From: Paramoeba atlantica
Taxonomy: Eukaryota > Protista > Discosea
Reading direction: 5' to 3'
Assembly (NCBI GenBank): GCA_977017575.1
Contig: CDRNVI010000046.1
Span: 62,001-126,000 of the forward strand
Length of the DNA stretch: 64,000 nucleotides
The notes below the pieces were generated by a model. That model was given only the letters and a program-made list of their open reading frames with translations. It did no database searches and was not told the DNA's origin. Numbering within the stretch: the stretch's first letter is position 1; each line of letters starts with the position of its first letter. Made by a program: the position numbers and the translations under genes. This document shows positions 11,301 through 56,068 of the stretch, in pieces.

Positions 11301-12892
11301 TGTGTTGTTGAAGTAGTTCATGCCTTTTCTTGTGTAAGGGATCGTCGCGGTTCGGTGCCGGGCAATGATTCGTTGCTTCTCCGGAGATATTCGTGGTATT
11401 TCTTGCATGCGTGGAAGATTGCAGTTGAGAGAGAGGCCCGTATATCTTGCAGCATCGGTGGGCGCATGAGAGCTTTTCTCGGCATGTGTGCTTGCAGGGT
11501 CCTTTTCCCCCCGCACCTGGGTACCCAAATGTAACACAAGTCGTACTGGGTCGCGCTGCGTGATTCGTGCTTTGATCTGGCTGTAAACTCGCGCTTTTAG
11601 GGGCTTCTTTGACGTCATTCTTCCTAGATATGTGCTTTGCTTCGTAGTGCTTCATAGTGCTGCGGTACTGCCAGTCACGCTCGGGGTCCTGTGTGGGGTC
11701 GTATCCTGACTGCATCGATCTCTCGCTTTTCTGTACTGCCTCGTTGACAGGGGCCCCTGCTTTTCTACCAGTTGCGAAAGCTTCACAGAGCTCAGAGACC
11801 CTACTAGTTGCCCATCCTGCCAGCACTCCGACCTTTTCCAGAAAGGTTGTATCGTCATCATTCATGTCAGGAACTGGATTCAGGGTGGGCAGGTCGTTCA
11901 CTGGGCCTTTGTACTGTGATGTTGCCGCTTTCTCTGCTCTTGACTGCGGGTTTCGCCGACTTCTAGTGGGCATGTCTGTGGCCTTCGGGGAGTGACCAAG
12001 TTCGCGAGTCGAGCTTCTCAAGTCCCATTTTAGCGTTCTGCCGGTGGTCGAGTTCAAATTCGTTGTGTCAAGGGTAGAGGTGCTTGCAGGTTCTTGATTG
12101 TGGGTAGGTCCAAATATTTTGCAACACTTGTGCAGGCACGTTACCTTGCTAGAGCATTTGTGTCTGCAAGGTCCTTTGAGAGGTTCCACGGTCTGTGGTT
12201 CGTTGGGTTTCGTAGAACGTGGCTTCGCAATTTGGAAAGGTGTGCCCTCTACTCTTTGTGCCGGTTGGTATGGTGTAATTTCGGTGTTGGAGTTTGTGTT
12301 TCGGGTAATTTTGATGGTAAACTTTTCAAGCCCCGGTACTTTAGCCCCGCTCACGGACTTCAGGACTGCTTTGCCTAGGGCGTTCGGGCTGGAGTACGAG
12401 TCGCTGATGCTAAGGTGGGGGTCATTGAATAGGGAAGTCCAGCTGGCGTGGTAGTACTTTTCCGATGGGTGCGAGTTTCTGCTAATTTCAATGTAGTCGC
12501 AGGCATGGTGATGTATTAGTTCCTCGAGTGTAGCTGCCTCTATTACCAAATCATGTGGTGTTCCCTTGCCGTTGAGGGCCTTACTAAGTGCAGCTTCAGC
12601 ACCTTGTTGTGAAGCGATGCGTTGTCTCACGAGGTGACTAAGACAAGCGGACTTTATGTCGGGGTAGTAGTTCCAAAGCATACTATCCATCGTGCGTATT
12701 TTGACGGGTCGTGCCCGGCTCTGGATGAAATGCAAAGACTGTTTCCGCGCAACGCCGGGTCCTTGAGGAAGGCCTGGTGTTGCATTTTCCTCCTGTGTGG
12801 CGGTTCTGGTTGTCATGGAGGTTTCATACAGTTAGTACCAAGTAGAAAAATTAAAATAATTCGACAAGGTACAGAAACTGTATCTTTATTAT
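8362..12892 (-). mobile_element. Non-LTR retrotransposon with restriction-like endonuclease (R2/NeSL/HERO-type); ORF 8362..12816, 1484 aa
   Basis: RT motifs SSPGQD, QKGF, DLRNAFGS, GVLQGDTLSP and YVDD. C-terminus has the CCHC knuckle CVVC..HVISGC, RHD, and the RPD..IVELTVPWE endonuclease motif. Confidence 0.95.
12865..12892 (-). other. Spliced-leader (mini-exon)-like sequence
   Basis: The minus strand reads ATAATAAAGATACAGTTTCTGTACCTTG, containing GATACAGTTTCTGTAC, the conserved core of kinetoplastid SL exons. It is followed by TCGAA, not the GTATG intron donor. Confidence 0.8.
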
Positions 12893-29268: not shown

Positions 29269-29955
29269 TCATACATTGGTTGAAATGTTTCGGGAATATA
29301 TCCGACTGACCCAAAGAGCGTCAGCAGGTTCCACTGAGGTGTAATAGTTGGAGACGATTTCTCCTATTTGAAAACCATGATTGCGATAAAAAGACAACGC
29401 TTCATCATTCCCTACTTGAACATGCAAAGCAATTTCGACTACGTGATGTTCTTCTGATGAAATTTTATCTATCGCGCCCATGAGTCTGTAAAATAACTTG
29501 GTTGCTACACCCAGGCGACGATAGGCCCGTAGTACGGCAAGCGTCATGATATAGCAGCGAAAAGGTCCATTCTTCTGACTAGTGCCTGAAGGAATCTCCT
29601 TTGATTCCGACTTCAGTGCGTACTCTTTTTCTCCAAAAGTCGTCAATGATTCCTGTTTTTTTATGTATTCCAATCTGCAGCATATAACGCCTACTGGTAT
29701 TTCGTTACAATATGCCATGTAGTTGAGCTCCAAGGAACTGTCAAAAATTCTTTCGTAAAATGTGTCTGAGTATTTCACAGGTAACACGCTTTCTTGTATC
29801 AGCCGGACGCGAAACGCCATTCGAATATCCTTCAAGGGTTGTATACGTATTTTTAGCTTGTCGGACTTAGAATCGTGCCCTGGAATGTATTCAATTTTCA
29901 CATTGTCTTTTGTTTCGCAAGGACCAGACACTCCAGAGACTATTTGTTCATGCAT
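29269..29955 (-). CDS. NAA50: N-alpha-acetyltransferase 50 (NatE/San)-like GNAT
   Basis: LPVKYSDTFY, YIMTLAVLRAYRRLGVATKL (acetyl-CoA motif A), LHVQVGNDEALSFY and NYY. Confidence 0.9.
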   Translation of the reverse strand: MHEQIVSGVSGPCETKDNVKIEYIPGHDSKSDKLKIRIQPLKDIRMAFRVRLIQESVLPVKYSDTFYERIFDSSLELNYMAYCNEIPVGVICCRLEYIKKQESLTTFGEKEYALKSESKEIPSGTSQKNGPFRCYIMTLAVLRAYRRLGVATKLFYRLMGAIDKISSEEHHVVEIALHVQVGNDEALSFYRNHGFQIGEIVSNYYTSVEPADALWVSRIYSRNISTNV

Positions 29956-30576
29956 TTCTCAACGAGAAAAGAAAAGGTACAAATTATTTTATTTAATAAA
30001 CGCTCAAAATAAGCATAGAAGAGATTTTGAAAGAAAGAAATGTCTGTACCAAAGCTGAAATGATATTGTACCTCCCGACTTCATTGTTACCCCTTTTTAG
30101 AGAAAAGCGACAAATAACTAGGAGGTAGCTGTAGCTAGGCACAGTCCATCTGAAGATCTTCGACCAAAACTGAAAAATAAGTAAGGGGGCGGGTATTGGC
30201 CATTGTGTTGGGGGGGTATAGTAATATAGAGAGCAAAATGTAGTTCGAAATATTTCGTGTTACTTTTACTTCGAATGAAATCGAAAGATCCCCTAGACGC
30301 TCCACTCCGTAGCTACGACTTGCTAGGTCGGGAAACGGTTTCCTTTTCTTGACCGACATATCTAAGCGACGAGGATAAAAACGCTGCAAATTGCAAATAA
30401 ACATTCTGTTCTCCTCATGATGTCATTGTGATTGAGGCGAGTATCCTGCTGAAGTCGATGCGAGTAATCCCACTTTCTTCAAAATATGAAGCCCAAAAAA
30501 GAGAACGTTCAGCATTCAGGATAGATCACTTGCCAATACTTCTCCCGATTCTCCTTTCTCCTGGCTCGACCATTTT

Positions 30577-33500
30577 TCATTCTTCTTCTTTTTCCTCTTC
30601 TTTCGTCCACTGTTGCCTTTGAGATGACGAAACGTTATACTCTGTTGTACTGGGAACTAGTTCACCTTCGCTTTCGCTTTCCTGATTGAGTAACCTCCGT
30701 AGCGTGCCTTCACGATACGTAGAAAGTCGGGCAAAAAGAGCCTTACCAAACATCATGTGCTTCGAACGCTCTTCTCGACAAGTTCGTATTACTTGATGAA
30801 AGGCTGCATTCACTGCTTCAGAAAGCGTTCGGGTGTGAGCCTGACTGCCAGATATTAAAAGTATCGAACGCGTGCTTGAAGGAGTCAACAACCTTTTGAC
30901 CATAGGATCAGGAGCAAGGAGGAGTGCCTGGGATAAACCCTGTGCTACATATCTTGCCATAACGGGGTACGTTTCGGAGTCGTTGTCCCAGTCTAACGGA
31001 ACTGATCGTTGTAAATTGTTCCGTATCACGTGCTTCAGAAGTCCGTGAGTCAGCAATTCAAGAGGAATACGAAGAACATGGCACGAGCTGAGCTCAAACG
31101 CGCTCAACAAGTCAAAAAAGAGGTGCGCGAGAGTTTCTGTTAATTGGGTCTCAGTAGCGTATACATAATTGCGGTATTTTGGGACGAGCACGCGAATAGA
31201 CTGGCTTTTTTCTGATAGTACGTGTTGCACCTTATATTGAGAATCCTTAGAGCTTCGCAGAGACGCAACGCTTATGTGACATACGTCGGGAACATACGAA
31301 TCGCGTTCACCTTCAATTTCTTTTGAAAGACGTTTGAGATGAAAAACGTTATCTCGAGCATCATTATCGATTGCCAAAAAAAGAGTCTGCATTTCCGCGA
31401 GGTGCTGTTCCGTTGGCGCAAAAAGTTCAAGCTCTCGAACAAGTTGACTTTGAATCCGACAAAGGGAAAGGCTGAAACGAAGATTTTGAAAAAGCGTCCC
31501 GGAGGTGACGTGAAGCCGTAGTTGGCGACCACGGAGAGACCCCACTGGTGTGTTTTCTGCGGTGTTCCCAGAAGAATCTGTGGAAGGGACTTCGACAGAT
31601 GATTCATCATCGCTTGTGTCCTCCGACTGAAAATGGTTCCACTCTTCACCCTCTTTGCGAAAGGCATCCTCTAGTGCCCCAATCAGGACTTCGGGGGTAA
31701 GTGAAATAATAATCTCTCTTGCTGGAGATGGGAGGCTGGACATCTCAGCAGATAAAAAAGGGGTCACACGAAGTTCCCTGTACTCGCGTGGTGCCCAGCG
31801 AAGTCGATTAAATAAATGTGCGTACGCGCGTTGAAGTTTAACTCGTAGCCTCTGTATCACCTCTTGCATGGCATCAGAAAATTGCGCTCCCATAGAACGC
31901 AAGTGGTGCAATTCGTCTTCAGCCTCTGTCCGTAAAATGCGTTCCAATGCATCGATGTCCAGCATGTGACCGGTGGAGCGTGGGTGTGTTGAGGAATCAG
32001 GACCGACATTTACGTCGCGAAAAATATAGGACGTGTACCGCGCAATTCGAGCAGCCGTAGTAAACAGGATGCCACTTGTAGTTTCGTCATCTGCGGGTGT
32101 TGACACATTTTCTCGGTCGCTATCCGCATTTCGCGTTCCCCCTACGATCTCTTTTACTGGAGAACCACTAGTTCTGTCAGTGGAGGATCCAGTCCCTTCA
32201 TGAGACACGAAAGAAACATCAAGAAGAAACCTTGTGTTTTCAAAAACAACCTCGTTAGTAAGCTCGTCCATTTGGTCGGTAGACACATACAGGTCCGCGA
32301 TTTCGCTAGACACCGGAGGGGTTAAGCCTTGCTCAACTTGCGATGTGATGAGAGATATATTGAGACAGGGATTCCTACCGCTGCTGTACAACATTAGTCT
32401 CTGCGGTGGGCACGACCGATATAAATCGTGAGCCGTATGAAGAGCGGCTTCAAGCAATTCGCTATTTTGACCCGCAGCGTATAGCTCATTGACTTCATCT
32501 GTGCCATAGAGGTGAGGAACTGCAAGTATTGTTTGGTACATGTGAAACATCTCCGGATCTTCCAGCCCAAGTTGGTTTGACTGCCGCAAAATAGTGTCGT
32601 AGGTGCGATCGAGTTCCAAGCGCGCATGTAGCATCATGGAAGCAGACAGATAGACGGGCATGAAAAGAGGGTCAGTCGCAAAGAAAAAGTCAAAGAACCG
32701 ACCGACGACGTGTACGGGGCCCTTATCGTAGGCTGTAGCAAACAGAGTCGCGATCCAAGCCATGGCGTAGTTCCCCTCCATGTGCCCGGAGGCCTCGATG
32801 TGCCTGGCTACTATGGGATTACGATATTCCACCAGAGGATGAACAAGGCGATATAAAGCCTGGGTAAATTTCATTCCATGAGTAAGATGCGGCCGAATCC
32901 AGTATTTTTTTAGCAGATGCATCAGAGGAATCGCGTCATCTTTGCTGCAAAGAAGATAGGGCACTAAAGCCACTTCGTTCAGCCCTTGATAGTAGGACGC
33001 TTCGTGATCGTTAGAGAACACTTGTTTCATTATGAACCAAAGATCATCCTGCTGCTTGAGATCTGTTGTGTTTCCATAGCGGCATCGGGACAAATCCTTT
33101 TTTATTTGTACAGACGTAGTGGCTTCCATCAATGATTCCGTATAACCTATGGGCCACGTAACCGTATTCTCGTACTTCAGTAGTCTACGCCATGCACAAC
33201 AGCGATCCATGATGTCCGTTCTCAAACCGGACTGAATCGCCCGATGGCGCAGACGAGCCAAAGCGGAATGAAACTGATTCTCCGAATCCAGGTTTTGCTT
33301 TAACCAGCTTCGTGCGTCCGAATTTCTCAAAATTAAAAATGGCGTCGAGTATACGAAATAGCTGCGAGGAGCATATCGAAAAGAGAATCTACCTCCAGAA
33401 CGTTCTGTACAGTTCATATAAAAATGAAAAACGTTTTCCGTTTTTTTGGCGGCTAAAGCTAATGTCTGAATAGCACTTGAGGAGATGGATGTAGAAGTTT

Positions 33501-35004
33501 CTTTCGAAACAGTTACGGCGGAAGCCAGCCATGAGATCGCGGCCCTGCTTTCGTCATTTGTAGGCAGCCCCGCTTTAATTGCAAGTCCACACTTAGTCAA
33601 GCGTTCTCCTTTTGTCCAAGTTACATTTATCATCTCTTCCTCAAAATATACAGGCAATTGTTTCTCTGCAGAAAGAAAAGCTGTGCTTGATAAGAGCAGG
33701 GGAACGGGTTGAGGTTCTGGACTTAGAAATACAACTTCTTCTAGTTTCTCAGCCTGATTTCGGATAAAGAAGTCTTCGCTATACGTCTTTGGCACCGCTG
33801 GTGGCAAGAATCCGTTGTCTTCGATGGGAGCTTCAAGAAGGTCTACACCATGGAAGACAACTCGGTACCACCCTGATCGAAGCTCTTTGGAGGGAAGTAA
33901 AAGCTCCCATTGATGTTCAGGAAAATCTTCATATTGTGTTGATTTCGCGAGACCTTTTTCGGCATACGTTGAAAATCGGGACATAATCTGTTTGAGTGGA
34001 ACTTTATGGTTCGAAGGAAAGGAACGAATTACTCTATGTCTTCGCGAAAGTGAGGCGTGCGAGAATCTAAGAGCAATGTTCGGAATAGGAGAATATGTTG
34101 TGGAAGCAGAGCGGTACTCTACGCTTATCATTGCTCGGCTTCCTACCCAATTGCGATACGCTCTGTACAGAAAACTTAGTTGAACCGATAAAGTAAGCTC
34201 AGCTTCGGACACTACGATGGTATTATAAAGGGGCTCCTTCTTGGGATACTGTATCAGCAGTTTCCCTCGTGGCAATAAATGAAAAGGTTCAGTGTAGCGC
34301 AAGCCCATACGGAACACGTAGCACGCTTTTAACGGTTGGGATGAAGTGTGTAATGTTCCTCCTTCTCTTTCCGGTACGCGTAAGAGAATTCTTTTACGTG
34401 TGTCACTCCACACGACTTTTTCGCACGGAATACACCCCCCTTCCTTTGGATTTTGCAGAATCGGATGAAACTCTAATAGATCGATTTCACAGAGATCTAC
34501 ACTATCGGCACTTGAGCGCAAGACCTGAGAAGCAAAGGCGTCATACCAAGAATGATTTTCCGTATCTGTGCGACGTAGACAAATTCTGTCCCCGGCAAAT
34601 AAAACAGGACCAAGGCGCTTGTCACGGCACACTGGCGTTCTGTCCTCCACAAGAGAAGTCTGAGACGTGTCCGAACGTGACTTAGGGAATGGATAAAATT
34701 CCCAGCCCGCATACCTGGCCCATTCGGGTGTTGCATATGCAGGAGGTCCCAAAACATTTGATAGCTGAATCGCTGGATCGGCAATAATCGCCGCTCGAAG
34801 GCTTTTCCTCTCCTTTTCAAGTTCGGAGTCGCCATCTACACAAGAAGTTGTGATAAATGCTCTTACGCATCGAATCCACGGAAGCGTGGCAGATGACGAT
34901 TTTTCTTTTTGTGACACACATCCGTCCGTACTGCACAATCGATTTGAGGTCTTGTCAATCCCGTTCAAAAGAGATAAAAACAAGCAGAAGAATAGAAGTT
35001 TCAT
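30577..35004 (-). CDS. Signal-peptide-bearing TBC (Rab-GAP) domain protein, paralogue 1 (about 1475 aa)
   Basis: The first ATG gives MKLLFFCLFLSLLNG. The TBC1D20/Gyp8-like core has IKKDLSR (Arg finger), YYQG (Gln finger) and WIATLF..RFFDFFFATDPLFMPVYLSAS. Confidence 0.85.
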   Translation of the reverse strand: MKLLFFCLFLSLLNGIDKTSNRLCSTDGCVSQKEKSSSATLPWIRCVRAFITTSCVDGDSELEKERKSLRAAIIADPAIQLSNVLGPPAYATPEWARYAGWEFYPFPKSRSDTSQTSLVEDRTPVCRDKRLGPVLFAGDRICLRRTDTENHSWYDAFASQVLRSSADSVDLCEIDLLEFHPILQNPKEGGCIPCEKVVWSDTRKRILLRVPEREGGTLHTSSQPLKACYVFRMGLRYTEPFHLLPRGKLLIQYPKKEPLYNTIVVSEAELTLSVQLSFLYRAYRNWVGSRAMISVEYRSASTTYSPIPNIALRFSHASLSRRHRVIRSFPSNHKVPLKQIMSRFSTYAEKGLAKSTQYEDFPEHQWELLLPSKELRSGWYRVVFHGVDLLEAPIEDNGFLPPAVPKTYSEDFFIRNQAEKLEEVVFLSPEPQPVPLLLSSTAFLSAEKQLPVYFEEEMINVTWTKGERLTKCGLAIKAGLPTNDESRAAISWLASAVTVSKETSTSISSSAIQTLALAAKKTENVFHFYMNCTERSGGRFSFRYAPRSYFVYSTPFLILRNSDARSWLKQNLDSENQFHSALARLRHRAIQSGLRTDIMDRCCAWRRLLKYENTVTWPIGYTESLMEATTSVQIKKDLSRCRYGNTTDLKQQDDLWFIMKQVFSNDHEASYYQGLNEVALVPYLLCSKDDAIPLMHLLKKYWIRPHLTHGMKFTQALYRLVHPLVEYRNPIVARHIEASGHMEGNYAMAWIATLFATAYDKGPVHVVGRFFDFFFATDPLFMPVYLSASMMLHARLELDRTYDTILRQSNQLGLEDPEMFHMYQTILAVPHLYGTDEVNELYAAGQNSELLEAALHTAHDLYRSCPPQRLMLYSSGRNPCLNISLITSQVEQGLTPPVSSEIADLYVSTDQMDELTNEVVFENTRFLLDVSFVSHEGTGSSTDRTSGSPVKEIVGGTRNADSDRENVSTPADDETTSGILFTTAARIARYTSYIFRDVNVGPDSSTHPRSTGHMLDIDALERILRTEAEDELHHLRSMGAQFSDAMQEVIQRLRVKLQRAYAHLFNRLRWAPREYRELRVTPFLSAEMSSLPSPAREIIISLTPEVLIGALEDAFRKEGEEWNHFQSEDTSDDESSVEVPSTDSSGNTAENTPVGSLRGRQLRLHVTSGTLFQNLRFSLSLCRIQSQLVRELELFAPTEQHLAEMQTLFLAIDNDARDNVFHLKRLSKEIEGERDSYVPDVCHISVASLRSSKDSQYKVQHVLSEKSQSIRVLVPKYRNYVYATETQLTETLAHLFFDLLSAFELSSCHVLRIPLELLTHGLLKHVIRNNLQRSVPLDWDNDSETYPVMARYVAQGLSQALLLAPDPMVKRLLTPSSTRSILLISGSQAHTRTLSEAVNAAFHQVIRTCREERSKHMMFGKALFARLSTYREGTLRRLLNQESESEGELVPSTTEYNVSSSQRQQWTKEEEKEEE

Positions 35005-35323
35005 CTCATGTTGGTATGACAAGGTTCTCGCATTAGATTGCTGCGCATTGCTGTTCCATTATTGTAAAAATAAATTGTTCGCTTTAAGAAACATTAGTTT
35101 GTATTTCTAGTCTGAACTCAAAACTATGGTTCTCCTGATTCAACACGCGAATCATACCATATTCGACATGCTGCGAATGACACATGCGAATCTTGAATTG
35201 AACTGCGAATCAACTGTGATTTTTTTTTCTCTTGCTCTTGTATGTAGAAGTATAAAAAGTAAAATACGTTTAAAATGCCCCAAAAAACAAGCTAGCGAAA
35301 TATTTTTGAACGGTGTAACTATG

Positions 35324-35944
35324 TTAATTTGGCGCCCCAAAAGCTTCGGGAAGTCTTTCAATTGTATATCGATGACGACTAATGTACATGATGGGAACAC
35401 CCGGGATCTTTCTAATTCTTCTTTTCAGATCTTTATCACAGGTTGCTACAATATAAATTCGATGTTGCGTGATGCGGTCAACAATGCAATCATCCGCGTA
35501 AGTGCTACCGCAGTGCAAACGCTGAAAACGAGGATCCCGTGCTAATCGAAGTGCGATACGAAATTTTTTCCCCAATTTTTCCATTTCAGCCAGCACGCAA
35601 TCACAAACACATGGTACACATTTCGCCATCAGGCAGTCCATCATTGAAGGAATGATTTCCAACTTATTTTGCATGGAAAAATTTATAAAATTTGTGTCTA
35701 GAAGAATGTGAAAGGGAGGCCCAAGGGCGTGATTATACGTGAGAAACATTGAGCTTGGCATTTGTTCGGTGCGACGAACTTCCTTAGCGTCAAAATGTTG
35801 AGCATCTGGGTCGGTAAGACCTTTCCTGTTGTATGTAACTTGATACTGGTGATGCTCTTCGTCCTTTTCTCGTTCTCTCTGTAGTCGGTCTTTATGGAGA
35901 ATGCGCTTTATAGCTACCCTGCGTGTTTGTCGTGATTTCGTCAT
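35324..35944 (-). CDS. FCF1: rRNA-processing PIN nuclease Fcf1/Utp24
   Basis: [51 protein letters not shown]. Confidence 0.96.
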
Positions 35945-36208
35945 GTTAGAATATTTTTTATCGGAAAGTAAACTTGTACGGTGTCAAAAGAGACAAACGA
36001 ACCACAGACGTAGAAAAAATAGGAAAACTGTAGAGTTGAGAAAAGCAGAACGCCAAAAGTCGAACTTACAACGGTGCGCTAAACGTAGCGCATCTTTTCA
36101 TAATAGAATTTTGAAGGTGCGTGAGACGTACACTTAAAAGTAGAACGGTGTGACAAAATTTTTACAAAACATACCCTGGATGGGGTAATGAGGTAATTCC
36201 CTCCCATC

Positions 36209-36305
36209 AGTGACTTCGTTAAACGCGGTGGTTGTTTTCAACTTAGAAGTCACTCATGCTGCGCGCTTCGCGTTGAAAACTACCTCCGCGTTTAACGAAG
36301 TCACT
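36209..36305. repeat. 97-bp fold-back mini-element (34-bp arms); degenerate second copy near 20846-20920
   Basis: Arms 36209-36242 and 36272-36305 differ at 2 positions. The loop TTAGA..GCTGCGCGCTTCGC is shared with the second copy. Confidence 0.8.
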
Positions 36306-37134
36306 AAAAAAGAAAAATTGCCAAAACAGCATGAAAGAACAATTTTTTGGGTGAAACCGAAGTCAACTTCGTGTTTTGGCGTATTAAATAGATTACAATG
36401 GATTTGGTCAAGGGACACCACAAGGAAGATGCCTTTTCACAAGCACGATGAACTTCACACATTGCCTCTGCCTTATTGTACGTGACAGACTCCGGGTCGT
36501 TGTAATCACCTCCTTTGGTGTTAAACCCTCTGTTACGATGCTGGTTCCCCATATCTCGATTTATTAATTTTTGATAATTCAATATCCCAGTCGCACGGAT
36601 GTCGTACACTGTTCTCCGAGATATCCCGTACTTTTCTCGAATAGCCTTCACCGAATCCTGGGTTCGACAAATCTCGCGTTTGTCGTAAATTGTGAGTTCA
36701 ACTCGCTGCCGCTTTTTTTCGTTTACCGTTGGAGGTGCATTCGTTTTTAGAACAGGTGCCCGTTCCCCTACCTGGGGGGAGGGTGGCGCTGACCGAGCCC
36801 AACTCGACAGCGGACCTTTTATCATATGCACGGTTGTCGGTACACCGTCCGTGTGCGGCATATGTTGACGAAGAGAAACAGATAGAGCAGATAGAGAAAG
36901 CTAAAAAATCTACAGTATTGAGTAACTTAATGTTGGAAGTTGGTAGCCTAAGTGACTTTCCAAATAGAATAAAAAAAGAAAAAATCAAATCGGTCCCACC
37001 ACACGAACTTTTTTCAGCTTCAATTTTGTGCGTATTAAAGGGGGGGTCCCACCACACAAATTTTCTTCAGCCTCCTTTTTGTGCATATTAAAGGGGGGTA
37101 AGAGGGGGGTGCATATTAAAGGGGGGGGTCACAG
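36306..37134 (-). mobile_element. 5' fragment of a pogo/Tigger-like transposon (ORF from ATG 36861)
   Basis: CENP-B-type HTH (RVELTIYDKREI..AIREKYGISRRTVYDI) lies next to the terminus TATTAAAGGGGGGGGTCACAG|TA. No catalytic domain. Confidence 0.75.
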
Positions 37135-37687
37135 TATTTTATGCAATGCGATGAAATCATTTCTTTTCGGTTCGAAAGCGCCATCGTGGACAACATGGTA
37201 TGAGGCGTGTTCGGAGTGAAGGGACAGAAATCGCCGACAATTGCATCCACTACAAGAACTCTACTAAGTTAATAGACAGAAATTCTGCATATTGTACGTT
37301 TGCGCCATAAAAATAGAAAAAAAGTCAAAAGTATGAAAAAGACCAAATTTGCTTCACTTTAACCAATGATCCCTAGGGTATTTCAAAGAGCGCTCATCGA
37401 AATTGCCCTCCAGCCGAGAGCTTCTTTTAGGAGAAATACTCTTAATTAGACTTTGTCGTTCAAAATGACAATGTTTGTGGCTTAACGTGTCTGAAATATG
37501 CTGTATAAGTTTATCTTGGCAAAGCCCTTGGCTTGACCCATTTCTTGAGAGCGAAAGTTTCAGGGTATCTTCAACTTTTATGATAACACACTAAAGCCAA
37601 GGATGAAAATCATCGATGAATTGACGCATTGCTGGCTACTCATACTGATTCTCGGAAGTTGAGCACTCAAATCCTGAAGAATCTTCC

Positions 37688-38284
37688 CTAAGTATCTTCC
37701 TTGAAGTGTCTTAGTTCACAATTTGGTATTTCTTTGAGTGCTCCGGAGTACAAATTTAGCATTCGAATTCGATGCTCGAAGTAGTCTATGGCCTGTTTGC
37801 TGGGAAGAGTAAGAAAAGCGTGGGCAGATAAAATAATAAATAATGTCCAGGAAAAAAGAATAATTTTTTTGAAACCACATAGCCACATGGCCCAAAGCGC
37901 AAGCAAAGTTTGTGATATGTATAATGCTACAGAAAGAAATTCAGATTTTATCCGTAGATTTCCGTACATAATTCGCATTCGATGCCTCGCGAAAAGCACA
38001 AGGAGGGGGAAGAAAAAACGGGGATAAATGCAACTGTACCCCAGCCACACCGCAAGTGCTATATTAAAGTAATTACGCATAAAATGTCCCCAGTTGATAA
38101 CATAATATGCAGCATGGCATCCCGATGGGGGGATGCATGGAGGGTGCAGTAATGATTTCCACGATCTTATCTCGCTGCTTTTAAAGTGAAAAACAAAATT
38201 TATCGCAATAAAAACAAAATCAAGTGTCGACTGCCCCAGCATACATGAAACTAAATTAACTAAGTATTCTAATTTGTCTATCAT
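37688..38284 (-). CDS. PRA1: PRA1-family (prenylated Rab acceptor) membrane protein
   Basis: N..HF..NY..I motif, two long hydrophobic hairpins, and the LSAHAF motif. Confidence 0.6.
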   Translation of the reverse strand: MIDKLEYLVNLVSCMLGQSTLDFVFIAINFVFHFKSSEIRSWKSLLHPPCIPPSGCHAAYYVINWGHFMRNYFNIALAVWLGYSCIYPRFFFPLLVLFARHRMRIMYGNLRIKSEFLSVALYISQTLLALWAMWLCGFKKIILFSWTLFIILSAHAFLTLPSKQAIDYFEHRIRMLNLYSGALKEIPNCELRHFKEDT

Positions 38285-38864
38285 TCTTATCACAATATTC
38301 CTTAAAGCAGTACTATATTTGCAGCTTGCGAGATGCAAAGGAAGTTTGAAAAAGAACTTAAAAATCCTACTAAAAAGTCAAACTAAAGAGCATACGATCA
38401 GTTAATTTGACTCAAAACAGAAATCATTTTTTTTATCATGCGAAAATTGAAAACATCATGTAAGAACAGAATGCTCATTCGAAGACGTTCGCACACGCGA
38501 TGCTACATAGCATGCTAACCTGTTGTCTTGGCTAAGGAAGAATGAAAGTGAACTAAAGATTGAAAGTTAACAGACTTTTCTTAATACACGTTCTTAGTAC
38601 ACGTGAGAGGCTGCGTGTATCATCTCGCGTGATCTTGTTTTGCCATAGCAGTTTTGACACAGTAAAGAAAAAACAGTAAAACATAGTGTCAGTTTTCTCT
38701 TTCACAACGTTTGTATAAAAGCGTACACGTTTTATATAAATTTTATATAATATTTTATAACATGTATCTACACGTTATTTTATATACATGTTTTTTGATT
38801 ATTATTATTATTGGTTTTCATTCGATTATCTATCTTTCATTCGATTATCTACTGCATTTCTTCA

Positions 38865-39292
38865 ATGGAGTCGAACGCTGAGGTGAAAGACCGAATCCAA
38901 AGTTCCATTGAGTCCTCTTTGTCCTCCGATCATACTCTTCACGACCTCGTCGTTCTCACCATGAAAAAAAGCTTTACTACAAGTGTAGAAGGCCCAACGT
39001 GTTTACGAAACCACGTTTGGAAATCTTAACTGAGGATCTGGAAGGAAAGGTTGTAGAGACAATGGAGCGAATTACCCGTACGATGGATACGTTTGTCCAC
39101 CGCGGGCGTTCCATTTGCGGTGTGACGCTTTCGTGCTCGCTTATGGAACGAGTAATTTGTTTCCTAATTGAACATCAAGAGCATCTGCTCTTAGACGTGG
39201 GGCCCCGTGGTGTTTACTTCTTGGAGCAAGCCACTCAAGACTTAGAATCCTTTCTTGAGAAGAACCCTCTGTATGCCCCGCAGCGAAAATGA
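38865..39292 (+). pseudogene. Possible plus-strand gene (about 142 aa) frameshifted at an A7 run
   Basis: Adding one A at 38964-38970 joins MESNAEVKD.. to ..VFTKPRLEIL..LEKNPLYAPQRK. A pyrimidine-rich leader precedes it. Confidence 0.4.
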
Positions 39293-40195
39293 GTAAGTGA
39301 CGTTTTGCTCAGTATGGAGATCACTTACTGGAAGTCCCTCACGGGCCTGCCGTGCGTGGCGTAAACGTGCAAAAGTTGACAGTAATCCTACTACAGAGAC
39401 GGATGCTGACTTCTTTGTGTTTGTGTTCTTTAAATTGTACTTGGGAGCAGTTGTTCGAACTACAAGGTCTGTGGACCCTATCGGATACACGTGTTTCAAT
39501 TCGCACTCTGCGAGAGGACTTCACCCGAGTGGCAATGAAGGTGTGAAGGTCTGCTGAAACCTTGCAAAGCTCCGTTAAAACTCGCTGAACCACTGCATCA
39601 GTCTAACGTGACCGAAATCGGTTCTTCACGAACGCGGTTAGCTCACGTACAGAAACGTGTCCAAGAAAAACCATTTTCGAGATAAGCTCTGTGTGTGGCA
39701 TGGTCAACTAGAAGTACAACAGGGAAAGAATAGCACAGAAGGCGTTGAGATTGTAACACTTAATTTTATCAATCTCAAAAGAATTAAACAGGAGATCGGT
39801 AATGAATAATGCAGATTTCGAAGCGGCCATTATTTTGTGCACATAAACGTCGAAAATAGGTCGTCGTTTCCGGGTAGTGAGCAATAAATAATATAAAAGA
39901 AATATTTCCCTTCAAGCAAATTACTTTTCTATAAGCAGAACGTACTCGAAATAGTAATACTTATTGAATTCCAGAGAAATGGTTGTATTTCAAGATTTCA
40001 GCATAAACGTGTATACAATATACGTCATATTAACGATCCACATTTGCTTTAATTGGACGTATAAAAACGCGCGCATCGCCAAAGAGTCCAAGAATACTTT
40101 GGCAAAAGAAGTGTCATAAAATTTACAGGATATATAGAAGTCTACTCCTTATAGACATTGATTCGGAATTCGCACAAAAACTTCCTCATTATTAT

Positions 40196-43100
40196 TTACT
40201 CTTCTTTAGAATGTAACGGAACTCCACTCAATTTCCTACGTGTCACACCTTGAGGTACCGAGAAGTCTGCCTCAGCGGAATTCGCCGCCGGGTGAACGAC
40301 TAACCGCTTCGGGGAGGATCCACTTTCCATCTCCTCACTGTTCTTCCCCTCCTCTCCCCACTGCTGTGTCTCGGCATTCGACTCCACTGGACCAAGAAAC
40401 GGGTCCTCCTCCTCCTCCTCCTTCCCCCTCAACTGCATCGACGACCCTTCCCCAGGACCTGACGTTGTCTCCCACCCCTCTTCCCACAGCGAGGTCCCGC
40501 CGGACTCCTCCGGCTCCCTGGATGATCCGAGGGCACTGCATGTGCTGGTCTCATCCCACTCACTCCCGTCTGCTGTTGCTGTGTGATTCTGCTGCTCTCG
40601 AAGTATGGGCTCCTCCTCGTACGACCCGACACGGAATCGGGAGGGGGTGAGATGAATCGGCTGGGGTGGGGGCGCGGGAGGTGCGGAGAGGTGAGAGGAC
40701 GAGGGCGTCGGGGAGGCATGGGAGAGCGTACGGCCGCGGAGACGAGAGCGCGACCGGGACCGACGCCCGCCGGTACCGCTGCCAAACATCGCTCGTTTCG
40801 CTTCCTCTTCACGCCGGGAGAGCACGGCACGGCCAAAGGCTTTGTTGAGTGCCTTAGTGTAGATTTTTGACCCTTTGCGGGATCCGGCGCAGAAGTAGAC
40901 CGCGTGGGCCCCGAATGGCTGGTTGAGACGGTGAATCATAAGATCGGGGGCTCGTAAGAGGGTGTCTATGAGGGCTTTGGTGTTGTACTGTGCTATGGCT
41001 TTGGTGCAGTAAGTTTGGTTGTTCCATTGACCCTCTGGGAGTCGTTTCAGATGGTAGTACAGGACGTGGCGAACAAAGTCGTGCGTGAGTTCATCGACGG
41101 GGATGCGTAAGGAGTAACACGGACTGCGCTGAAACTCATCAAAGAGTCGGTAGTACAAATTTGATAAGGTCTCTGTCAACTGCTCTTCCGTGGAATAGAT
41201 GTACTGCTTGAAGCGAGGAAGAAGTACCCGAATACGACAACTGCCGTCAGATTCTACGGTAAAAGGATCCACTTCGAACTGTGAGGTACCGGAACTCAAA
41301 ATAAACGCCGCTGGACGAGCTCGAGCACCTTTTATGTACGATCCCTTATTCACGATTTCTTCAACCTCAGTAGAAATCACGCTTTCAACGCGATTCGCAG
41401 TTCGTACTTCCTTGTCTTGAGCGCTATACTTGGCTGAAATAAATAATGATTGCAGCTGCTGCAGATCATTCCCGGAAGTAATGTACAAGGATGGACGCTG
41501 TAACGCCACTGACATGCGAGTTCGGGACAAAAATTGCCGCAATTGAACGTACAAATCGTGCTGTGGAATGTAGAGTCGCAGTGCCATTTGTAATAAACTA
41601 CGTCCTCCATCATACAAAAATTGAGAATGGGTAGATGAACGCTTTATTTGAAACCTGGAATCTGAGCCCACGGTTTCATTGCTTGGAATTTCCGGGCAGG
41701 ATGCTGCGCTCTTGGGATCAGAAAATTCTTCCATGGCTTGCTCTTGTTGCAAAACTTCATCAATGGCTTGTAGAATGGCCGGAGCCGTGAGATGCATAAT
41801 GGAGGAGGCTAAGGGGTTTTTGGCCCATTCAAGCATCTCTTCGTATAAAAAGGGCTTCATAAGAAACTCAGCTGATCGCGAATTCCACCTTTTCCAACGT
41901 TTAAAAGCCTGTGCGTAAGCTTCTTGTAATTCTTGGCGTAATGTCGTTTCCGGAGTTTCGCCACTTAAAGATGCAGTTTCAGAATTGAATAGTTGGTTCA
42001 CAGTATCTTGAAGCGTGCTTTCAAGTTCATCTAGTTGTAACGCAACATAGGCGTCTTCTAGCGGACCGGCGGCATCCAGTACGCTCATACAGTCAACAGG
42101 AGAAGAACTTTTTGACGCAGTGCTAGACCCATGAGGTGATGGGCTTCGACTGTGTCCACCTTTTCGTTCTGGTGCAGCAAAGAAACGAAACGGGTTCGGG
42201 ATACCCATGTCACTTCGACTTCGATCTCTGCGTGAGGATGACGACCTGCGTGAGGATGAAGATTTGCGAGGCCTACGATTTAGCCTCACGTCACTTAGAG
42301 TAGAATTCGTGTATTCAACCTCAGTGCTATCTTTATTCGACTTTCCAAACAGCCCTGCACTAGACGGTCTCGAGTTTCGGTCTGTTAAGGAAATTTCTGC
42401 GCAACGACTTGATGGCAGTGGTTCACTGTCGGCCGATTCAATATAAACAAATTCTGGATCATTCATCAGCTTTTCTACTGTGTCTTCAAAGGACATGAGA
42501 ACATCCACACGAACAGAAGAAACAGCCCCCTCCGATAGCAACTGATCGCTGTCAAGAATGCTTTGGCTTGGCGTATCTATAGGAGACAACGTTACATTCG
42601 GGGATAACACGGGAGACACAACATCACTCGATTGATCGCCTTCCTCATTCGGTCGCTGACCCAAACACGGGTTTGTCCCTGGCTCGTAGAGCATTAGTCG
42701 CTCCGGTGGGCACACCTTGTAGAGCTCCAGAGCATAGGCGAGTACATTTTCAAGAGGTTCGTCTGTCTTACCAGAACCATATAGTTCATCAATCTCGGTA
42801 GTACCATATCGATGGGGGACAGAAAAGATGGCTTGGTACATGTGAAACGTCTCCGGCTCCTCGAGTCCCAGTTCCTCGGCCTGGCGGACTATATCGTGAT
42901 ATGCGCGATCCAAGTCTGCCCGGGCATGTATCAGCATGGAAGCAGAGAGGTAAACGGGCATAAAGAAAGGATCGGTAGCAAAGAAAAAGTCGTACATGCG
43001 TGCAACCACATGCAGTGGCCCTTTGGTGTACGCTGTGGTAAATAGAGTTGCTATCCACGCAAAAGCATAGTCTCCTCCAGCCTGGCTGGCGGCTTCTATG

Positions 43101-45370
43101 TGCCGAGCACCGACAGGGTCTTTGTACTCAACCAGAGGATGGACAAGCCGAAACAGGGACCTTGTTACTTTCGTCCCTGGTGTTAAATGTGGTCGAATCC
43201 AATACCTCGTTAATTGCTGCATGAGAGACACAGTTGTTTGAGTATCGCATAGAAGGTAAGGAACCATAGCCACATCGTCCAATCCCTGATAATAAGGCGC
43301 CTCCAAATCGACAGAAAGGATATGATTCATAATGTAGCTAAGTTCATTTTGCTGGTGAGGATCTGAAGAATTTCCGTAGCGACATCGATGTAAGTCTTTT
43401 TGAACCTGGTGGTAATTGGGAAGAGCATCAGGTTTATTTGCCCTACCTAGCCGCATTGCAGTATCGAGATTACCCACTAACATTTGCTCCCATGCCTTGC
43501 ACCGACGTTGCGCAGCGTCCTGTAATCCAAATTCAATGGCTCGCTGTCGTGTGCTCTCTAGAGAAGGGGCGGCATGAGGAGATTCCATGTGCTGTCGCTG
43601 TACGCGTTTTACCCACTGCTGCGCGTGATCTGGATTTAGAATAAGAAAAGGAGTAGAATCCACGACAAATTTTTTTTCGTCCTTTATCAACCACATAATC
43701 CCCGAGTGCGTTTCCTGGCAAGTCATTCGAAAGAAAAATAAGGAAGTAGGTAGCCTCATTGGGTCTATCACAGCGTTGTACAGCACATCCGCTTCGACCG
43801 GAGGATCCAAATGCGACATTTCAGAAACCTCTATGTTAGAAGCCAGCAAGAGAACTTGATTAGGTTCTGCGTCTTCCGGTGTACCGGCAAACAGTGCGAT
43901 ATCACAATGCGCTTTTAGTTTGTTGCTCGCGTGCCATGCCACATTGATGTGCCTATCGGTACTAAACACAGGAATACGTCTTTCCCGGATAGATGCCGAT
44001 TCCTCCCCATCAGGGAAGCCTCCAGCAATAAGACGAGCCTCCGGAGAAACGAATCGCACGTCATATTGGCTTTGTTGTCGTTGCACACGTATGTAGAACT
44101 TTTCGCTGTACGTAAACTCTGTGGTGGGTGGGGAAAAGTTGTTTTGCTGTGTGGGAGGATCGATGATGTCGACGTGGTGAAATGCTACGCGGTACCAACC
44201 CGTTCGCATGCGAGACATTGGCACAAGCAATCTCCAGTAGTGCTGAGCGTGATCCTTAAAATACTTCGTTCTTACTGCATTCTTTCGGCTAATAGAGTAA
44301 TAGCGAGCAAGAATCTCCTTAAGTGGGATCGTGTGCGATCTGTCCGCGTCCATTGAGCGTCTCCAAGGTGTCATTTTCTGAGAATCCCCTCTTGCAGCGG
44401 AACCGAAAGACATATCTAGGCTGACCTCTGGCACAGGAGAAAATTCATCGGACCCCGGGGCTTGATGTTGCAAGCTCAGCGCGGCCAATGGGCCGACGGA
44501 TTTATCCCATGCACGGTAAAGAAATCGAACGATGACTTGTGAGTACCCACCTGGTACAATTTCAACGAGATTAGGGTGATACGTCGGTGCATACGAAGGT
44601 TCTTGAATATGCAACACTCCGCGTCGCATTAGAGTAAACGGGGTGCTGTACCGAAGCCCCACGCTAAAGACGTAGCACCCGAATGTCAGTTTGTTAAACA
44701 AATCTTGTGAAGCAAGGTCTTTCCCCACAGGATTTGGTACAATAACGACAATACTTTTCCCAGAGCCACTCCACGTGACGTTTGGCAACGTGACACAACT
44801 TCCTTCTTCCGTGTTCCTTAGGGCCGGATGAAACTTATTGAGATCAACTCGACACATCTCAACCGACTCAGTATTGCGATGTAGAGCTTGGGTGGCAAAG
44901 GTTTTGTACCAAGCTTCATGATGAGGTGACCAGGGTTTCTCTTTCAACTCTACTGCGTCTCCCATGAAGAGAATTGGGCCACGGTACGCGTCATAAGTAG
45001 GTTCCGAGATTTGTACGCCTGGAGGTAGATGTAAGGTGGTATTTGCTTTTCCATGACCCCCCACGTCCCAATGCGTGTATCTAATCCACTGTGGTGAGAG
45101 GTACTTCGGTGGGCGATACATTTCTGAGACCAACAAGCTAGGGTCGCGGTTTAGAACCTCAGCAAATGGACCTTCAAATTTCATGATAGATTCAGCTTTT
45201 GTGAGGTTGTAGGGCCCTTTCGGTGAAAAACGATTCCCCTCTTGTAGCTCGCCGTCATGAGATTCTACACTTCTGTTCGCCACTGATGAATCGCGCAGAG
45301 GTGCCGATAACAGTAAGAATAATGCCACGCAACGTACAAGCTGAAACATTCCTATTTTTTCCTTTCTCAT
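40196..45370 (-). CDS. Signal-peptide-bearing TBC (Rab-GAP) domain protein, paralogue 2 (1724 aa)
   Basis: N-terminus MRKEKIGMFQLVRCVALFLLLSA; VQKDLHR and YYQG fingers. It aligns by eye with paralogue 1 across the N-terminal, TBC and C-terminal domains. Confidence 0.85.
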   Translation of the reverse strand: MRKEKIGMFQLVRCVALFLLLSAPLRDSSVANRSVESHDGELQEGNRFSPKGPYNLTKAESIMKFEGPFAEVLNRDPSLLVSEMYRPPKYLSPQWIRYTHWDVGGHGKANTTLHLPPGVQISEPTYDAYRGPILFMGDAVELKEKPWSPHHEAWYKTFATQALHRNTESVEMCRVDLNKFHPALRNTEEGSCVTLPNVTWSGSGKSIVVIVPNPVGKDLASQDLFNKLTFGCYVFSVGLRYSTPFTLMRRGVLHIQEPSYAPTYHPNLVEIVPGGYSQVIVRFLYRAWDKSVGPLAALSLQHQAPGSDEFSPVPEVSLDMSFGSAARGDSQKMTPWRRSMDADRSHTIPLKEILARYYSISRKNAVRTKYFKDHAQHYWRLLVPMSRMRTGWYRVAFHHVDIIDPPTQQNNFSPPTTEFTYSEKFYIRVQRQQSQYDVRFVSPEARLIAGGFPDGEESASIRERRIPVFSTDRHINVAWHASNKLKAHCDIALFAGTPEDAEPNQVLLLASNIEVSEMSHLDPPVEADVLYNAVIDPMRLPTSLFFFRMTCQETHSGIMWLIKDEKKFVVDSTPFLILNPDHAQQWVKRVQRQHMESPHAAPSLESTRQRAIEFGLQDAAQRRCKAWEQMLVGNLDTAMRLGRANKPDALPNYHQVQKDLHRCRYGNSSDPHQQNELSYIMNHILSVDLEAPYYQGLDDVAMVPYLLCDTQTTVSLMQQLTRYWIRPHLTPGTKVTRSLFRLVHPLVEYKDPVGARHIEAASQAGGDYAFAWIATLFTTAYTKGPLHVVARMYDFFFATDPFFMPVYLSASMLIHARADLDRAYHDIVRQAEELGLEEPETFHMYQAIFSVPHRYGTTEIDELYGSGKTDEPLENVLAYALELYKVCPPERLMLYEPGTNPCLGQRPNEEGDQSSDVVSPVLSPNVTLSPIDTPSQSILDSDQLLSEGAVSSVRVDVLMSFEDTVEKLMNDPEFVYIESADSEPLPSSRCAEISLTDRNSRPSSAGLFGKSNKDSTEVEYTNSTLSDVRLNRRPRKSSSSRRSSSSRRDRSRSDMGIPNPFRFFAAPERKGGHSRSPSPHGSSTASKSSSPVDCMSVLDAAGPLEDAYVALQLDELESTLQDTVNQLFNSETASLSGETPETTLRQELQEAYAQAFKRWKRWNSRSAEFLMKPFLYEEMLEWAKNPLASSIMHLTAPAILQAIDEVLQQEQAMEEFSDPKSAASCPEIPSNETVGSDSRFQIKRSSTHSQFLYDGGRSLLQMALRLYIPQHDLYVQLRQFLSRTRMSVALQRPSLYITSGNDLQQLQSLFISAKYSAQDKEVRTANRVESVISTEVEEIVNKGSYIKGARARPAAFILSSGTSQFEVDPFTVESDGSCRIRVLLPRFKQYIYSTEEQLTETLSNLYYRLFDEFQRSPCYSLRIPVDELTHDFVRHVLYYHLKRLPEGQWNNQTYCTKAIAQYNTKALIDTLLRAPDLMIHRLNQPFGAHAVYFCAGSRKGSKIYTKALNKAFGRAVLSRREEEAKRAMFGSGTGGRRSRSRSRLRGRTLSHASPTPSSSHLSAPPAPPPQPIHLTPSRFRVGSYEEEPILREQQNHTATADGSEWDETSTCSALGSSREPEESGGTSLWEEGWETTSGPGEGSSMQLRGKEEEEEDPFLGPVESNAETQQWGEEGKNSEEMESGSSPKRLVVHPAANSAEADFSVPQGVTRRKLSGVPLHSKEE

Positions 45371-53723: not shown

Positions 53724-55578
53724 TCCAGGAGGGGTGTCTAGGGGGGTGCCTAGGGGGTTGTCCAGGAGGGGGTTTCTAGGAGGGGGTGCCTAGGGGGGGA
53801 TGTCTAGGAAGGGTGTCCAGGGGTGGTTGTCCAGGGGAGGGGTGTCTAGGGGGATTGCCCAGGAGAGGAGTGTCTAGGGGGTTTGTCCAGGGGAGTGTCT
53901 GGGGGGGTGTCGAGTGGGGGTGTCTAGGCGGTTTGTCTAGGGGGTGTGTCCAGGGGGGGGTGCATGGGAGGGATGTCTAGGGGGGGTGTCCAGGAGGGTT
54001 GTCCAGGGGGGTGTCCAAGGGGGTGTCCAAAGGGGTGTCCAAGGGGCTGTCCAGGGGTGGTTGTCCAGGGGAGGGGTGTCTAGGGGGATTGTCCAGGAGA
54101 GGTGTATCTAGGGGGTTTGTCCAGGGGAGTGTCTCGGGGGGTGTCTAGGCGGTTTGTCTAGGGGGTGTGTCCAGGGGAGGGGTGCATGGGAGGGGTGTCT
54201 AGGGGGGGTGTCGAGGAGGGTTGTCCAGGGGGGTGTCCAGGGGGGTGTCCAGAGGGGTGTCCAGGGGGGTGTCCAGGGGTGGTTGTCCAGGAGGGGGTGT
54301 CTAGGGGGGTGCCTAGGGGGGCATGTCTAGGGGGGTGCCTAGGGGGGCATGTCTAGGGGGGTGCCTAGGGGGGTGTCTAGGCGGTTTGTCTAGGGGGTGT
54401 GTCCAGGGGAGGGGTGCATGGGAGGGGTGTCTAGGGGGGGTGTCGAGGAGGGTTGTCCAGGGGGGTGTCCAGGGGGGTGTCCAGGGGTGGTTGTCCAGGG
54501 GAGGGGTGTCTAGGGGGATTGTCCAGGAGAGGTGTATCTAGGGGGTTTGTCCAGGGGAGTGTCTGGGGGGGTGTCTAGGCGGTTTGTCTAGGGGGTGTGT
54601 CCAGGGGAGGGGTGCATGGGAGGGGTGTCTAGGGGGGGTGTCGAGGAGGGTTGTCCAGGGGGGTGTCCAGGGGGGTGTCCAGGGGGGTGTCCAGGGGTGG
54701 TTGTCCAGGGGAGGGGTGTCTAGGGGGATTGTCCAGGAGAGGTGTATCTAGGGGGTTTGTCCAGGGGAGTGTTTGGGGGGGTGTCTAGGGGGTTTGTGTA
54801 GGGGGGGTGTCGAGGAGGGTTGTCCAGGGGGGTGTCCAGAGGGGTGTCCAGGGGGGTGTCCACACCCAGGGGGGTGTCCAGGGGTGGTTGTCCAGGAGGG
54901 GGTGTCTAGGGGGGTGCCTAGGGGGGCATGTCTAGGGGGGTGCCTAGGGGGGTGTCTAGGCGGTTTGTCTAGGGCGTGTGTCCTGGGGGGGGGTGCATGG
55001 GAGGGGTGCCTAGGGGGGTGTCCAGGGGGGTTGTCCAGGAGAGGTGTATCTAGGGGGTTTGTCCAGGGGAGTGTCTGGGGGGGTGTCTAGTGGGATTGTC
55101 CAGGGGGGTGTCCAGGGGGGTGTCCAGGGGGGTGTCCAGGAGGGGGTGTCTAGTGGGGTGCCTAGGGGGGTTGTCTAGGGGGTGTCCAAGGGGTTTGTCC
55201 AGCAGGGGTGTCTAGGGGGTATCTAAGGGTTTGTGCAGCAGACGTGTCTAGGGGGTGTCTAGGAGGGGTTGTCTAGGAGGGGTTGTCTAGGAGGGGTTGT
55301 CTAGGGGGGTGCCTAGGAGGGGGTGTTTAGGGAGGATGTCTAGGAGGGGTGTCTAAGAGGGTGTCTAGGGGGGTTGTCCAGGGGGTTGTCTGGGGGGGAG
55401 TCTAGGGGGGTGTCTAGGAGGGGTTGTCTGGGAGGGGGTGTTTAGGGAGGATGTCTAGGAGGGGTGTCCAAGAGGGTGTCTAGGGGGGTTGTCCAGGGGG
55501 TTGGCTACGGGGGAGTCTAGCGGGGGGGTCTAGGGGGGTGTCCAGGAGGTGTGTCTAGGGGGTGTCTAGGGGGGTGCC
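53724..55578 (+). repeat. G-rich degenerate tandem array (10-13-bp units such as GTCCAGGGGGGT / GTCTAGGGGGGT), with about 200-230-bp higher-order blocks
   Basis: Continuous G-run units on the plus strand. The block starting CCAGGGGAGGGGTGCATGG recurs at 54171, 54403 and 54601. Confidence 0.95.
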
Positions 55579-56068
55579 TTATGTCGATCAACATTTCGTC
55601 GGTCGTTAAAAAAAACACGCACCAGAATTTCATTTCGTGTGTATAGCCAAATATAAGTTATAATATAATATTCTGAAATAATTGAACTGAGATAATGCAC
55701 CCTACTCTTGTAATACGATATCAGAAACAGTTTTGTATAGGACTACTTTTGTATAAAACTTTCCCATTGAAAGAACTACTATCTAGTGTAAAGCTAAATC
55801 AATATAAATACGAATGGGCGGTTTGCGCCCGGCCGCAAAAATAATGCAAAGATCGTATATAGAAATACTATTAGAAAACAAATGAGGGCCAAAGAAGTTT
55901 TCTGCACTCGGGCGTCACCGCTCCCAATGTTCCAAATTTTGCATTGAGCAGTGCGAGGCAGCAGGCACACAAATCGTCGCGACTGAAGTTGTGAAATCAC
56001 AAAGCTTTGATGTGCATGTTTGCGAGAACTGCAAGCTGGAACCACGCGCAGCAAGCAGCTGAGCGCCA

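Follow-up and report, generated by a model that had tools for sequence, protein, structure and literature searches.

Two neighbouring giant proteins derived from a TBC1D20/Gyp8-type Rab-GAP have signal-peptide-like N-termini and may be exported

The 64,000-nucleotide (nt) stretch analysed here (contig CDRNVI010000046.1 of the Paramoeba atlantica assembly GCA_977017575.1, positions 62,001 to 126,000; hereafter the window) carries two large neighbouring kinetoplastid genes, p1 and p2, which lie in a one-way minus-strand gene cluster. Judging from the sequence, their products appear to have arisen by a lineage-specific duplication from a kinetoplastid Rab GTPase-activating protein (GAP) of the TBC-M (TBC1D20/Gyp8) type. 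Compared with TBC-M proteins, both have kept the catalytic fingers, have lost the tail anchor, and have gained a hydrophobic N-terminus, an N-domain of ~500 amino acids (aa) and a C-domain of ~400 aa. The reading that we tentatively favour, while giving it somewhat less than an even chance, is that p1 and p2 are exported and would meet Rabs in the cytosol of another cell; they may be secreted regulators of that cell's membrane traffic.

To our knowledge, no role has been described for TBC-family Rab-GAPs other than the regulation, from the cytosol, of their own cell's traffic, and the host-directed Rab GAPs that we know of come from bacteria, together with one oomycete effector, none of them being a true eukaryotic TBC protein. 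If export were true, TBC1D20-type GAPs released in this way would provide a concrete, testable handle on the control of host membranes in a eukaryote-in-eukaryote partnership. Even if p1 and p2 are cytosolic, they represent an orphan architecture within an ancient GAP class, in which the tail anchor has been lost and two new conserved domains are present. Furthermore, if the affiliation with Perkinsela holds, the sequenced relative of the p1/p2 lineage keeps only Rab1 and Rab2.

The coding sequences and the domains delimited within them are as follows.

30577..35004, minus strand: p1 coding sequence, 1475 aa plus stop, from the list of open reading frames (ORFs) and translation
34960..35004, minus strand: p1 signal-peptide-like N-terminus, MK + LLFFCLFLSLL + NG; Kyte-Doolittle (KD) hydrophobicity 2.91; the DNA is also a 33-nt polypyrimidine tract
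34780..34959, minus strand: p1 variable linker (residues 16-75), which contains four Cys and cannot be aligned to p2 (the BLASTP alignment begins at residue 76)
33280..34779, minus strand: p1 orphan N-domain, residues 76-575, 34% identical to p2
32365..33237, minus strand: p1 TBC Rab-GAP domain (Pfam PF00566; TBC1D20 structure 4hl4, E 4e-12)
33085-33105, minus strand: p1 Arg finger IKKDLSR, I634-R640
32986-32994, minus strand: p1 Gln finger YYQ, residues 671-673
30745..31962, minus strand: p1 conserved C-terminal domain of alpha/beta type (residues 1015-1420); 31% identical to p2, model pLDDT 54
40196..45370, minus strand: p2 coding sequence, 1724 aa plus stop
45299..45370, minus strand: p2 signal-peptide-like N-terminus, MRKEKIG MFQLVR CVALFLLLSA P; KD 2.75; M8 is a possible start
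43586..45145, minus strand: p2 orphan N-domain, residues 76-595, with 5/5 Cys conserved in p1
42665..43543, minus strand: p2 TBC Rab-GAP domain (Pfam PF00566)
43385-43405, minus strand: p2 Arg finger VQKDLHR, V656-R662
43286-43294, minus strand: p2 Gln finger YYQ, residues 693-695
40781..42040, minus strand: p2 conserved C-terminal domain, residues 1111-1530

The initial annotation had proposed that these two giant ORFs are paralogues, and the BLASTP comparison bears this out: residues 76-882 of p1 and 76-904 of p2 are 41% identical over ~840 aa, and a C-terminal block of ~400-430 aa (p1 1015-1419, p2 1111-1529) is 31% identical, while residues 1-75 and the linkers gave no alignment. Its further description of a shared, beta-rich N-region of ~550 aa stood in part. 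The region is indeed shared, but its length is ~500 aa (residues 76 to ~575), and the only basis for calling it beta-rich is a low-confidence AlphaFold model, built from a two-sequence alignment, whose pLDDT of 37 makes it unusable. In p2, the C-terminal domain is preceded by a 200-aa low-complexity linker with Arg/Ser-rich runs and followed by a 190-aa low-complexity tail. The Arg/Ser-rich runs (RKSSSSRRSSSSRRDRSRSD, RSRSRSRLRGR) and a 30-residue Pro/Ser tract are found in p2 alone, in its linker and tail (42056-42658 and 40199-40780, minus strand). The two proteins have similar acidic ends (...KEEEKEEE in p1, 30580-30594; ...HSKEE in p2, 40199-40210; both on the minus strand), outside which their last 50-190 residues are unrelated; this similarity could be a short motif, or could be due to chance.

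One Pfam RabGAP-TBC domain (PF00566) was detected in each protein, with E-values of 2.4e-15 for p1 and 1.8e-14 for p2 and with bit scores of 57.2 and 54.3, respectively, against a cut-off of 25.2. The dual fingers IxxDxxR and YxQ, which had been reported as intact, could be read in both p1 and p2 and align to the motifs of TBC1D20. Across the aligned TBC columns the two copies are merely 56% identical, and the retention of both fingers at this level argues that catalysis on a Rab would still be under selection in both of them. The best match among solved structures was TBC1D20 (4hl4/4hlq, E 4e-12), compared with 1e-5 for TBC1D1/TBC1D4. Members of the TBC1D20/Gyp8 class switch off Rab1/Rab2-type GTPases at the interface between the endoplasmic reticulum (ER) and the Golgi.

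The proposed kinship with TBC1D20/Gyp8 was also recovered in a HMMER search of 1.84 billion representative proteins with a profile made of residues 1-900 of both paralogues. The only full-length match was the window's own allele, and the other 149 matches listed covered the TBC columns only (~620-870). The sources of the named matches labelled K20372 TBC1D20/GYP8 were two prokinetoplastids (Papus and Apiculatamorpha), euglenids, amoebozoans, a foraminifer and a mollusc. Most of the top matches were proteins of ~320-450 aa with a C-terminal transmembrane (TM) helix, and such a tail anchor is the hallmark of TBC-M, the subfamily named by Gabernet-Castello et al. (PMC3655817).

The phylogeny against TBC1D20 relatives that the initial annotation had called for was built by maximum likelihood from 58 TBC domains, all of them TBC-M-like, so that the tree compares no other TBC subfamily. 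The two paralogues were sisters (SH-aLRT 99) on a very long stem of 1.78 changes per site, and the pair was placed loosely (89), with the caveat of long-branch attraction, beside two prokinetoplastid TBC1D20s and three unnamed sequences. Pelomyxa, the sole named amoebozoan included, was placed elsewhere. Since p1 and p2 stand beside the prokinetoplastid sequences and apart from Pelomyxa, the TBC domain seems to stem from a TBC-M gene native to the lineage, duplicated and fast-evolving, and not from a host. Acquisition of a host TBC domain through gene transfer was also considered, and is unsupported, given that Pelomyxa did not group with p1 and p2. Two defining features of TBC-M are absent from the pair, namely the tail anchor and the compact size (~350-450 aa, comprising the TBC domain and the anchor), p1 being 1475 aa and p2 1724 aa long and each carrying two conserved domains besides the TBC domain. 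We have therefore classified them as derived from TBC-M and not as members of it.

Both N-termini (MK / LLFFCLFLSLL / NGIDK in p1; MRKEK..MFQLVR / CVALFLLLSA / PLRDSS in p2) fit the layout of a signal peptide, with a positive n-region, an h-region within the range of 7-15 hydrophobic residues and a polar c-region. The best 10-residue KD mean within the first 35 residues was used as a measure; it is 2.91 in p1 and 2.75 in p2, versus at most 1.18 in seven neighbouring genes, in agreement with the signal-peptide-like starts originally noticed. The h-regions, with 10-11 residues, are too short to span a bilayer, and the positive charge lies on their N side. Under von Heijne's rules, this combination would point to a cleavable signal peptide or to an N-in orientation, and not to an N-out/C-in anchor. 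Candidate cleavage sites, chosen by eye, lie between LNG and I in p1 and between LLS and A or SVA and N in p2. The two N-termini cannot be aligned, yet they are alike in property, being hydrophobic and positively flanked.

No 19-residue window beyond the N-terminus exceeds a KD of 1.3 in either protein, so that neither has a second TM candidate, as had been noted from the sequence at the outset. The longest internal uncharged runs measure at most 19 aa with a mean KD below 1.3, the exception being the 30-aa Pro/Ser-rich tract of p2 (KD -0.46), and the highest internal hydrophobic peak falls in a buried TBC-fold helix which TBC1D20 has too. No C-terminal hydrophobic segment was found in p1 or p2, both of which end in hydrophilic sequence (...KEEE and ...SKEE). 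A hidden TM helix is ruled out in both proteins by the KD windows together with the lengths of the uncharged runs.

The position of the start codons bears directly on these N-termini. The open frame of p1 extends just six codons upstream of its ATG, and M1 is the sole in-frame ATG before Met233, with eight out-of-frame ATGs intervening. Conservation with p2 sets in at residue 76, so that the conserved protein can be made from M1 alone. Initiation downstream of the hydrophobic segment, an event that according to the initial annotation would undo the idea of export, would in p1 mean a start at Met233 and the loss of 157 conserved residues. In p2, a polypyrimidine tract lies upstream and the first AG after it falls inside codon 2, so that the real start may be M8 (MFQLVRCVALFLLLSAP...) rather than M1; read from M8, the N-terminus is still signal-peptide-like. 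The DNA of the p2 h-region contains no clean pyrimidine tract. One probable RNA run yielded two contigs of <200 nt on the stretch, one in the 3' part of p1 and one in the Fcf1 gene, with no ends bearing the spliced leader (SL).

Copies of p1 in run X2 and in the public ENA assembly allow a comparison. In the second allele seen in run X2 (77x contig), the hydrophobic core differs only by an in-frame insertion of 3 nt (an extra Phe) and by L13F, and further downstream there are four synonymous and three non-synonymous changes. The ENA allele (ERZ24900291 ctg3917l) is 98.8% identical to positions 29269-36917, with 14 gap openings, and the C-terminal third of p1 shows 12 synonymous and 8 non-synonymous differences. 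Its automatic gene call is shortened to 1214 aa by single-base deletions in homopolymer runs; the ENA contig with these frameshifts is of low depth, and the 77x contig has none of them. For p2, no record was found in the protein collection.

The domains that flank the TBC domain are orphans. Apart from the window's own allele, no relative of the N-domain was found among the 1.84 billion representatives by HMMER or by a word search of 5.8 billion clusters, and none was found in the ESM Atlas, in PDB profiles or in two JGI metagenome scans. With Pfam at E up to 10, the three rough modules of the N-domain and both C-domains returned nothing usable, hhalign revealed no internal repeats among those three modules, and the TBC piece alone had no match by word search. 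As no protein of the full architecture is present in the searched databases, the architecture is not general in kinetoplastids; its occurrence in free-living kinetoplastids, which had been named as a finding that would speak against export, was not encountered, the full-length searches matching the window's own allele only. The models of the C-domain are alpha/beta and of low confidence (pLDDT 54), and the fold searches gave mutually inconsistent leads (macro-like, Fy-3, G-alpha-like). Among Swiss-Prot models, the PARP9 macro region, an aminopeptidase N-domain and GTPases were weak leads at TM-scores of at most 0.26; in the PDB, G-alpha was matched at most at 0.26, which is not significant; and in the ESM Atlas, Fy-3/C12orf4 and Macro scored 0.80, below the reliability line, and are leads only.

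Taken as a mechanism, export would proceed as follows. The N-terminus would be a cleavable ER signal peptide that brings the whole protein into the secretory pathway, and p1 and p2, having no TM segment, glycosylphosphatidylinositol (GPI) signal or xDEL-type end, would leave the cell. With both fingers kept, the GAP must still meet Rab-GTP, and after export it could do so only in the cytosol of another cell. If the organism lives naked in the cytoplasm of a host amoeba, like Perkinsela, exocytosis would deliver p1 and p2 to the Rab1/Rab2-type GTPases of the host. Perkinsela lies free in the host cytoplasm, and secretion into that cytoplasm has been proposed for it (PMC5601477); in microsporidia, as outlined in PMC6460350, signal peptides have been added to otherwise cytosolic enzymes (hexokinase), which are secreted into the host cytoplasm. 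As effectors, p1 and p2 would switch off host Rab1/Rab2-type GTPases and could in this way influence the traffic between ER and Golgi, or the identity of membranes, in the surroundings of the symbiont, with the orphan N- and C-domains providing targeting. The most far-reaching form of this proposal, in which a kinetoplastid endosymbiont releases duplicated GAPs whose tail anchor has been swapped for a signal peptide, and which would be the first eukaryote-to-eukaryote secreted TBC Rab-GAP effectors, is in our opinion rather unlikely.

A number of observations weigh against export. The prediction is derived from simple rules of hydrophobicity and charge, and export has appeal only for an organism that lives within the cytoplasm of a host. 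The DNA that encodes the hydrophobic core of p1 is a nearly all-pyrimidine run of 33 nt followed by AG, and it also resembles a kinetoplastid trans-splice acceptor. In any untranslated region exceeding a few bases, upstream ORFs (uORFs) precede M1: one of 15 codons (35001-35048, minus strand) starts at 35048 and its TGA overlaps the p1 start codon (ATGA), and one of two codons (ATG AGA TGA) uses the same stop. In p2, Met63 and Met84 lie just before and at the start of the conserved region, and the choice of splice site could produce an isoform without the signal from either of them. N-glycosylation sequons occur at chance density, none being conserved between p1 and p2, and the five conserved Cys of the N-domain are odd in number; this count, together with Cys that are equally conserved in the TBC domain, is compatible with either a lumenal or a cytosolic location. 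The Arg/Ser-rich and acidic low-complexity linkers are of a kind commoner in cytosolic proteins.

The acceptor-like site in p1, the alternative Met codons of p2 and the cytosol-like linkers all speak for cytosolic GAPs that act on the organism's own Rab1/Rab2, a reading that we consider quite possible, if also short of an even chance. The hydrophobic N-terminus would then be either untranslated in the main mRNA, through trans-splicing or initiation further downstream, or a peripheral/monotopic membrane element that replaces the tail anchor. In its favour, every known TBC-M protein acts at the ER from the cytosolic side (PMC3655817), and the Rabs of Perkinsela, namely two Rab1 and one Rab2 only (PMC13393502), all belong to the substrate class of TBC1D20, so that two such GAPs could be housekeeping enzymes; were a Rab set of this size present here, the TBC-M pair could likewise be the organism's own housekeeping GAPs. 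However, residues 76-232 of p1, which are conserved with p2, need M1, and eight out-of-frame ATGs lie between it and the next in-frame start. The short h-regions with their N-side positive charge predict that the C-terminal part is translocated, and not an N-out/C-in topology. Moreover, the tail anchor is gone from both paralogues, while N-termini that are unalignable and yet hydrophobic have been kept, which is hard to explain if they are unused. A role within the secretory pathway or at the cell surface other than that of a GAP, with the TBC fold acting as a lumenal or extracellular scaffold for binding, would agree with the signal-like N-terminus and with an orphan N-domain that has five fully conserved Cys; we regard it as improbable, because the strict conservation of both fingers in copies so divergent over the TBC columns argues for GTPase-directed catalysis and because no lumenal GTPase substrates are known. 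Still less credible, and in our view very improbable, is an annotation artefact, in which the long ORFs would be chance fusions, or a pair of decaying genes (pseudogenes), with the hydrophobic start being a read-through of non-coding polypyrimidine DNA. The shortened ENA gene call and the polypyrimidine tract of the p1 h-region could be taken in this sense, but both ORFs (4.4 and 5.2 kb) are intact, conservation at the protein level extends over three separate domains, and synonymous changes exceed non-synonymous ones between the alleles (12:8 and 4:3). In addition, the frameshifts lie in homopolymers of a low-depth contig and disappear at 77x coverage, and the p2 h-region lacks a clean pyrimidine tract. 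Export of p1 and p2 stays, by a narrow margin over the cytosolic reading, our favoured, though tentative, explanation.

The one-way gene cluster that contains p1 and p2 is a typical kinetoplastid arrangement, and its other members encode a GNAT acetyltransferase, Fcf1, an ankyrin protein, Kri1 and a protein kinase. The pair is not strictly tandem, since the interval between the paralogues holds Fcf1 and the two ORFs listed below, which together may represent a mobile-element insertion that split a once-tandem pair. No further copy of p1 or p2 was found within the window. Exact look-ups of proteins encoded nearby returned no named cluster mates, and Fcf1 had no named relative at an identity of 90% or more.

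36304-36861, minus strand: 185-aa ORF between the paralogues, with weak matches to the transposase-type DNA-binding helix-turn-helix families HTH_23 and CENP-B_N
37688-38338, minus strand: orphan 216-aa ORF between the paralogues

Elsewhere in the window, an SL-like sequence, GATACAGTTTCTGTACCTTGTCGA, is located at 12860-12890 on the minus strand; its core, CAGTTTCTGTAC, is common to the SL primer of Perkinsela CCAP 1560/4, and its final bases differ from that primer. In a 2-kb segment (54001-56000), GC content (0.59) and GC skew (+0.53) are much higher than in the remaining window.

Among known systems, TBC1D20/Gyp8 is the closest to p1 and p2: it provides the best solved-structure match, it has the same dual Arg/Gln fingers, and the nearest database relatives carry this label, those of Papus and Apiculatamorpha among them; the nearest named TBC-M matches are prokinetoplastid. 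In contrast, p1 and p2 are 4-5 times larger, are without a tail anchor, possess a signal-like N-terminus, branch from a very long stem and have the TBC domain in a central position between two orphan domains. Giant TBC-M-like proteins from Mastigamoeba (1598 aa) and thrips (1656-1662 aa) are comparable in their very large size and in having a TBC domain that matches the same profile. Their TBC domain, however, is near the C-terminus, the profile match is confined to columns 627-856, without likeness to the N- or C-domain, and the Mastigamoeba protein is annotated as a 'putative C-tail anchored protein', unlike p1 and p2.

Functional parallels are offered by TBC-like Rab1 GAP effectors of bacteria, namely Legionella LepB, Shigella VirA and EspG of enteropathogenic Escherichia coli (EPEC). 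In addition, the Phytophthora RXLR effector Pi17063 is presented in PMC12315501 as an atypical GAP for host Rab-G3. If export is real, p1 and p2 would share with these effectors, as far as the latter account describes Pi17063, delivery to the host cytosol and the switching off of host Rabs by GAP catalysis; the effectors differ in their non-homologous or atypical folds and in their delivery by bacterial secretion systems or RXLR uptake. The microsporidian secreted hexokinases outlined above belong to a different enzyme class and a different organism, and their secretion has been demonstrated experimentally, according to the same outline. Unlike the bacterial and oomycete effectors, p1 and p2 are predicted from their sequence to combine a bona fide eukaryotic TBC domain with a classical ER-type signal.

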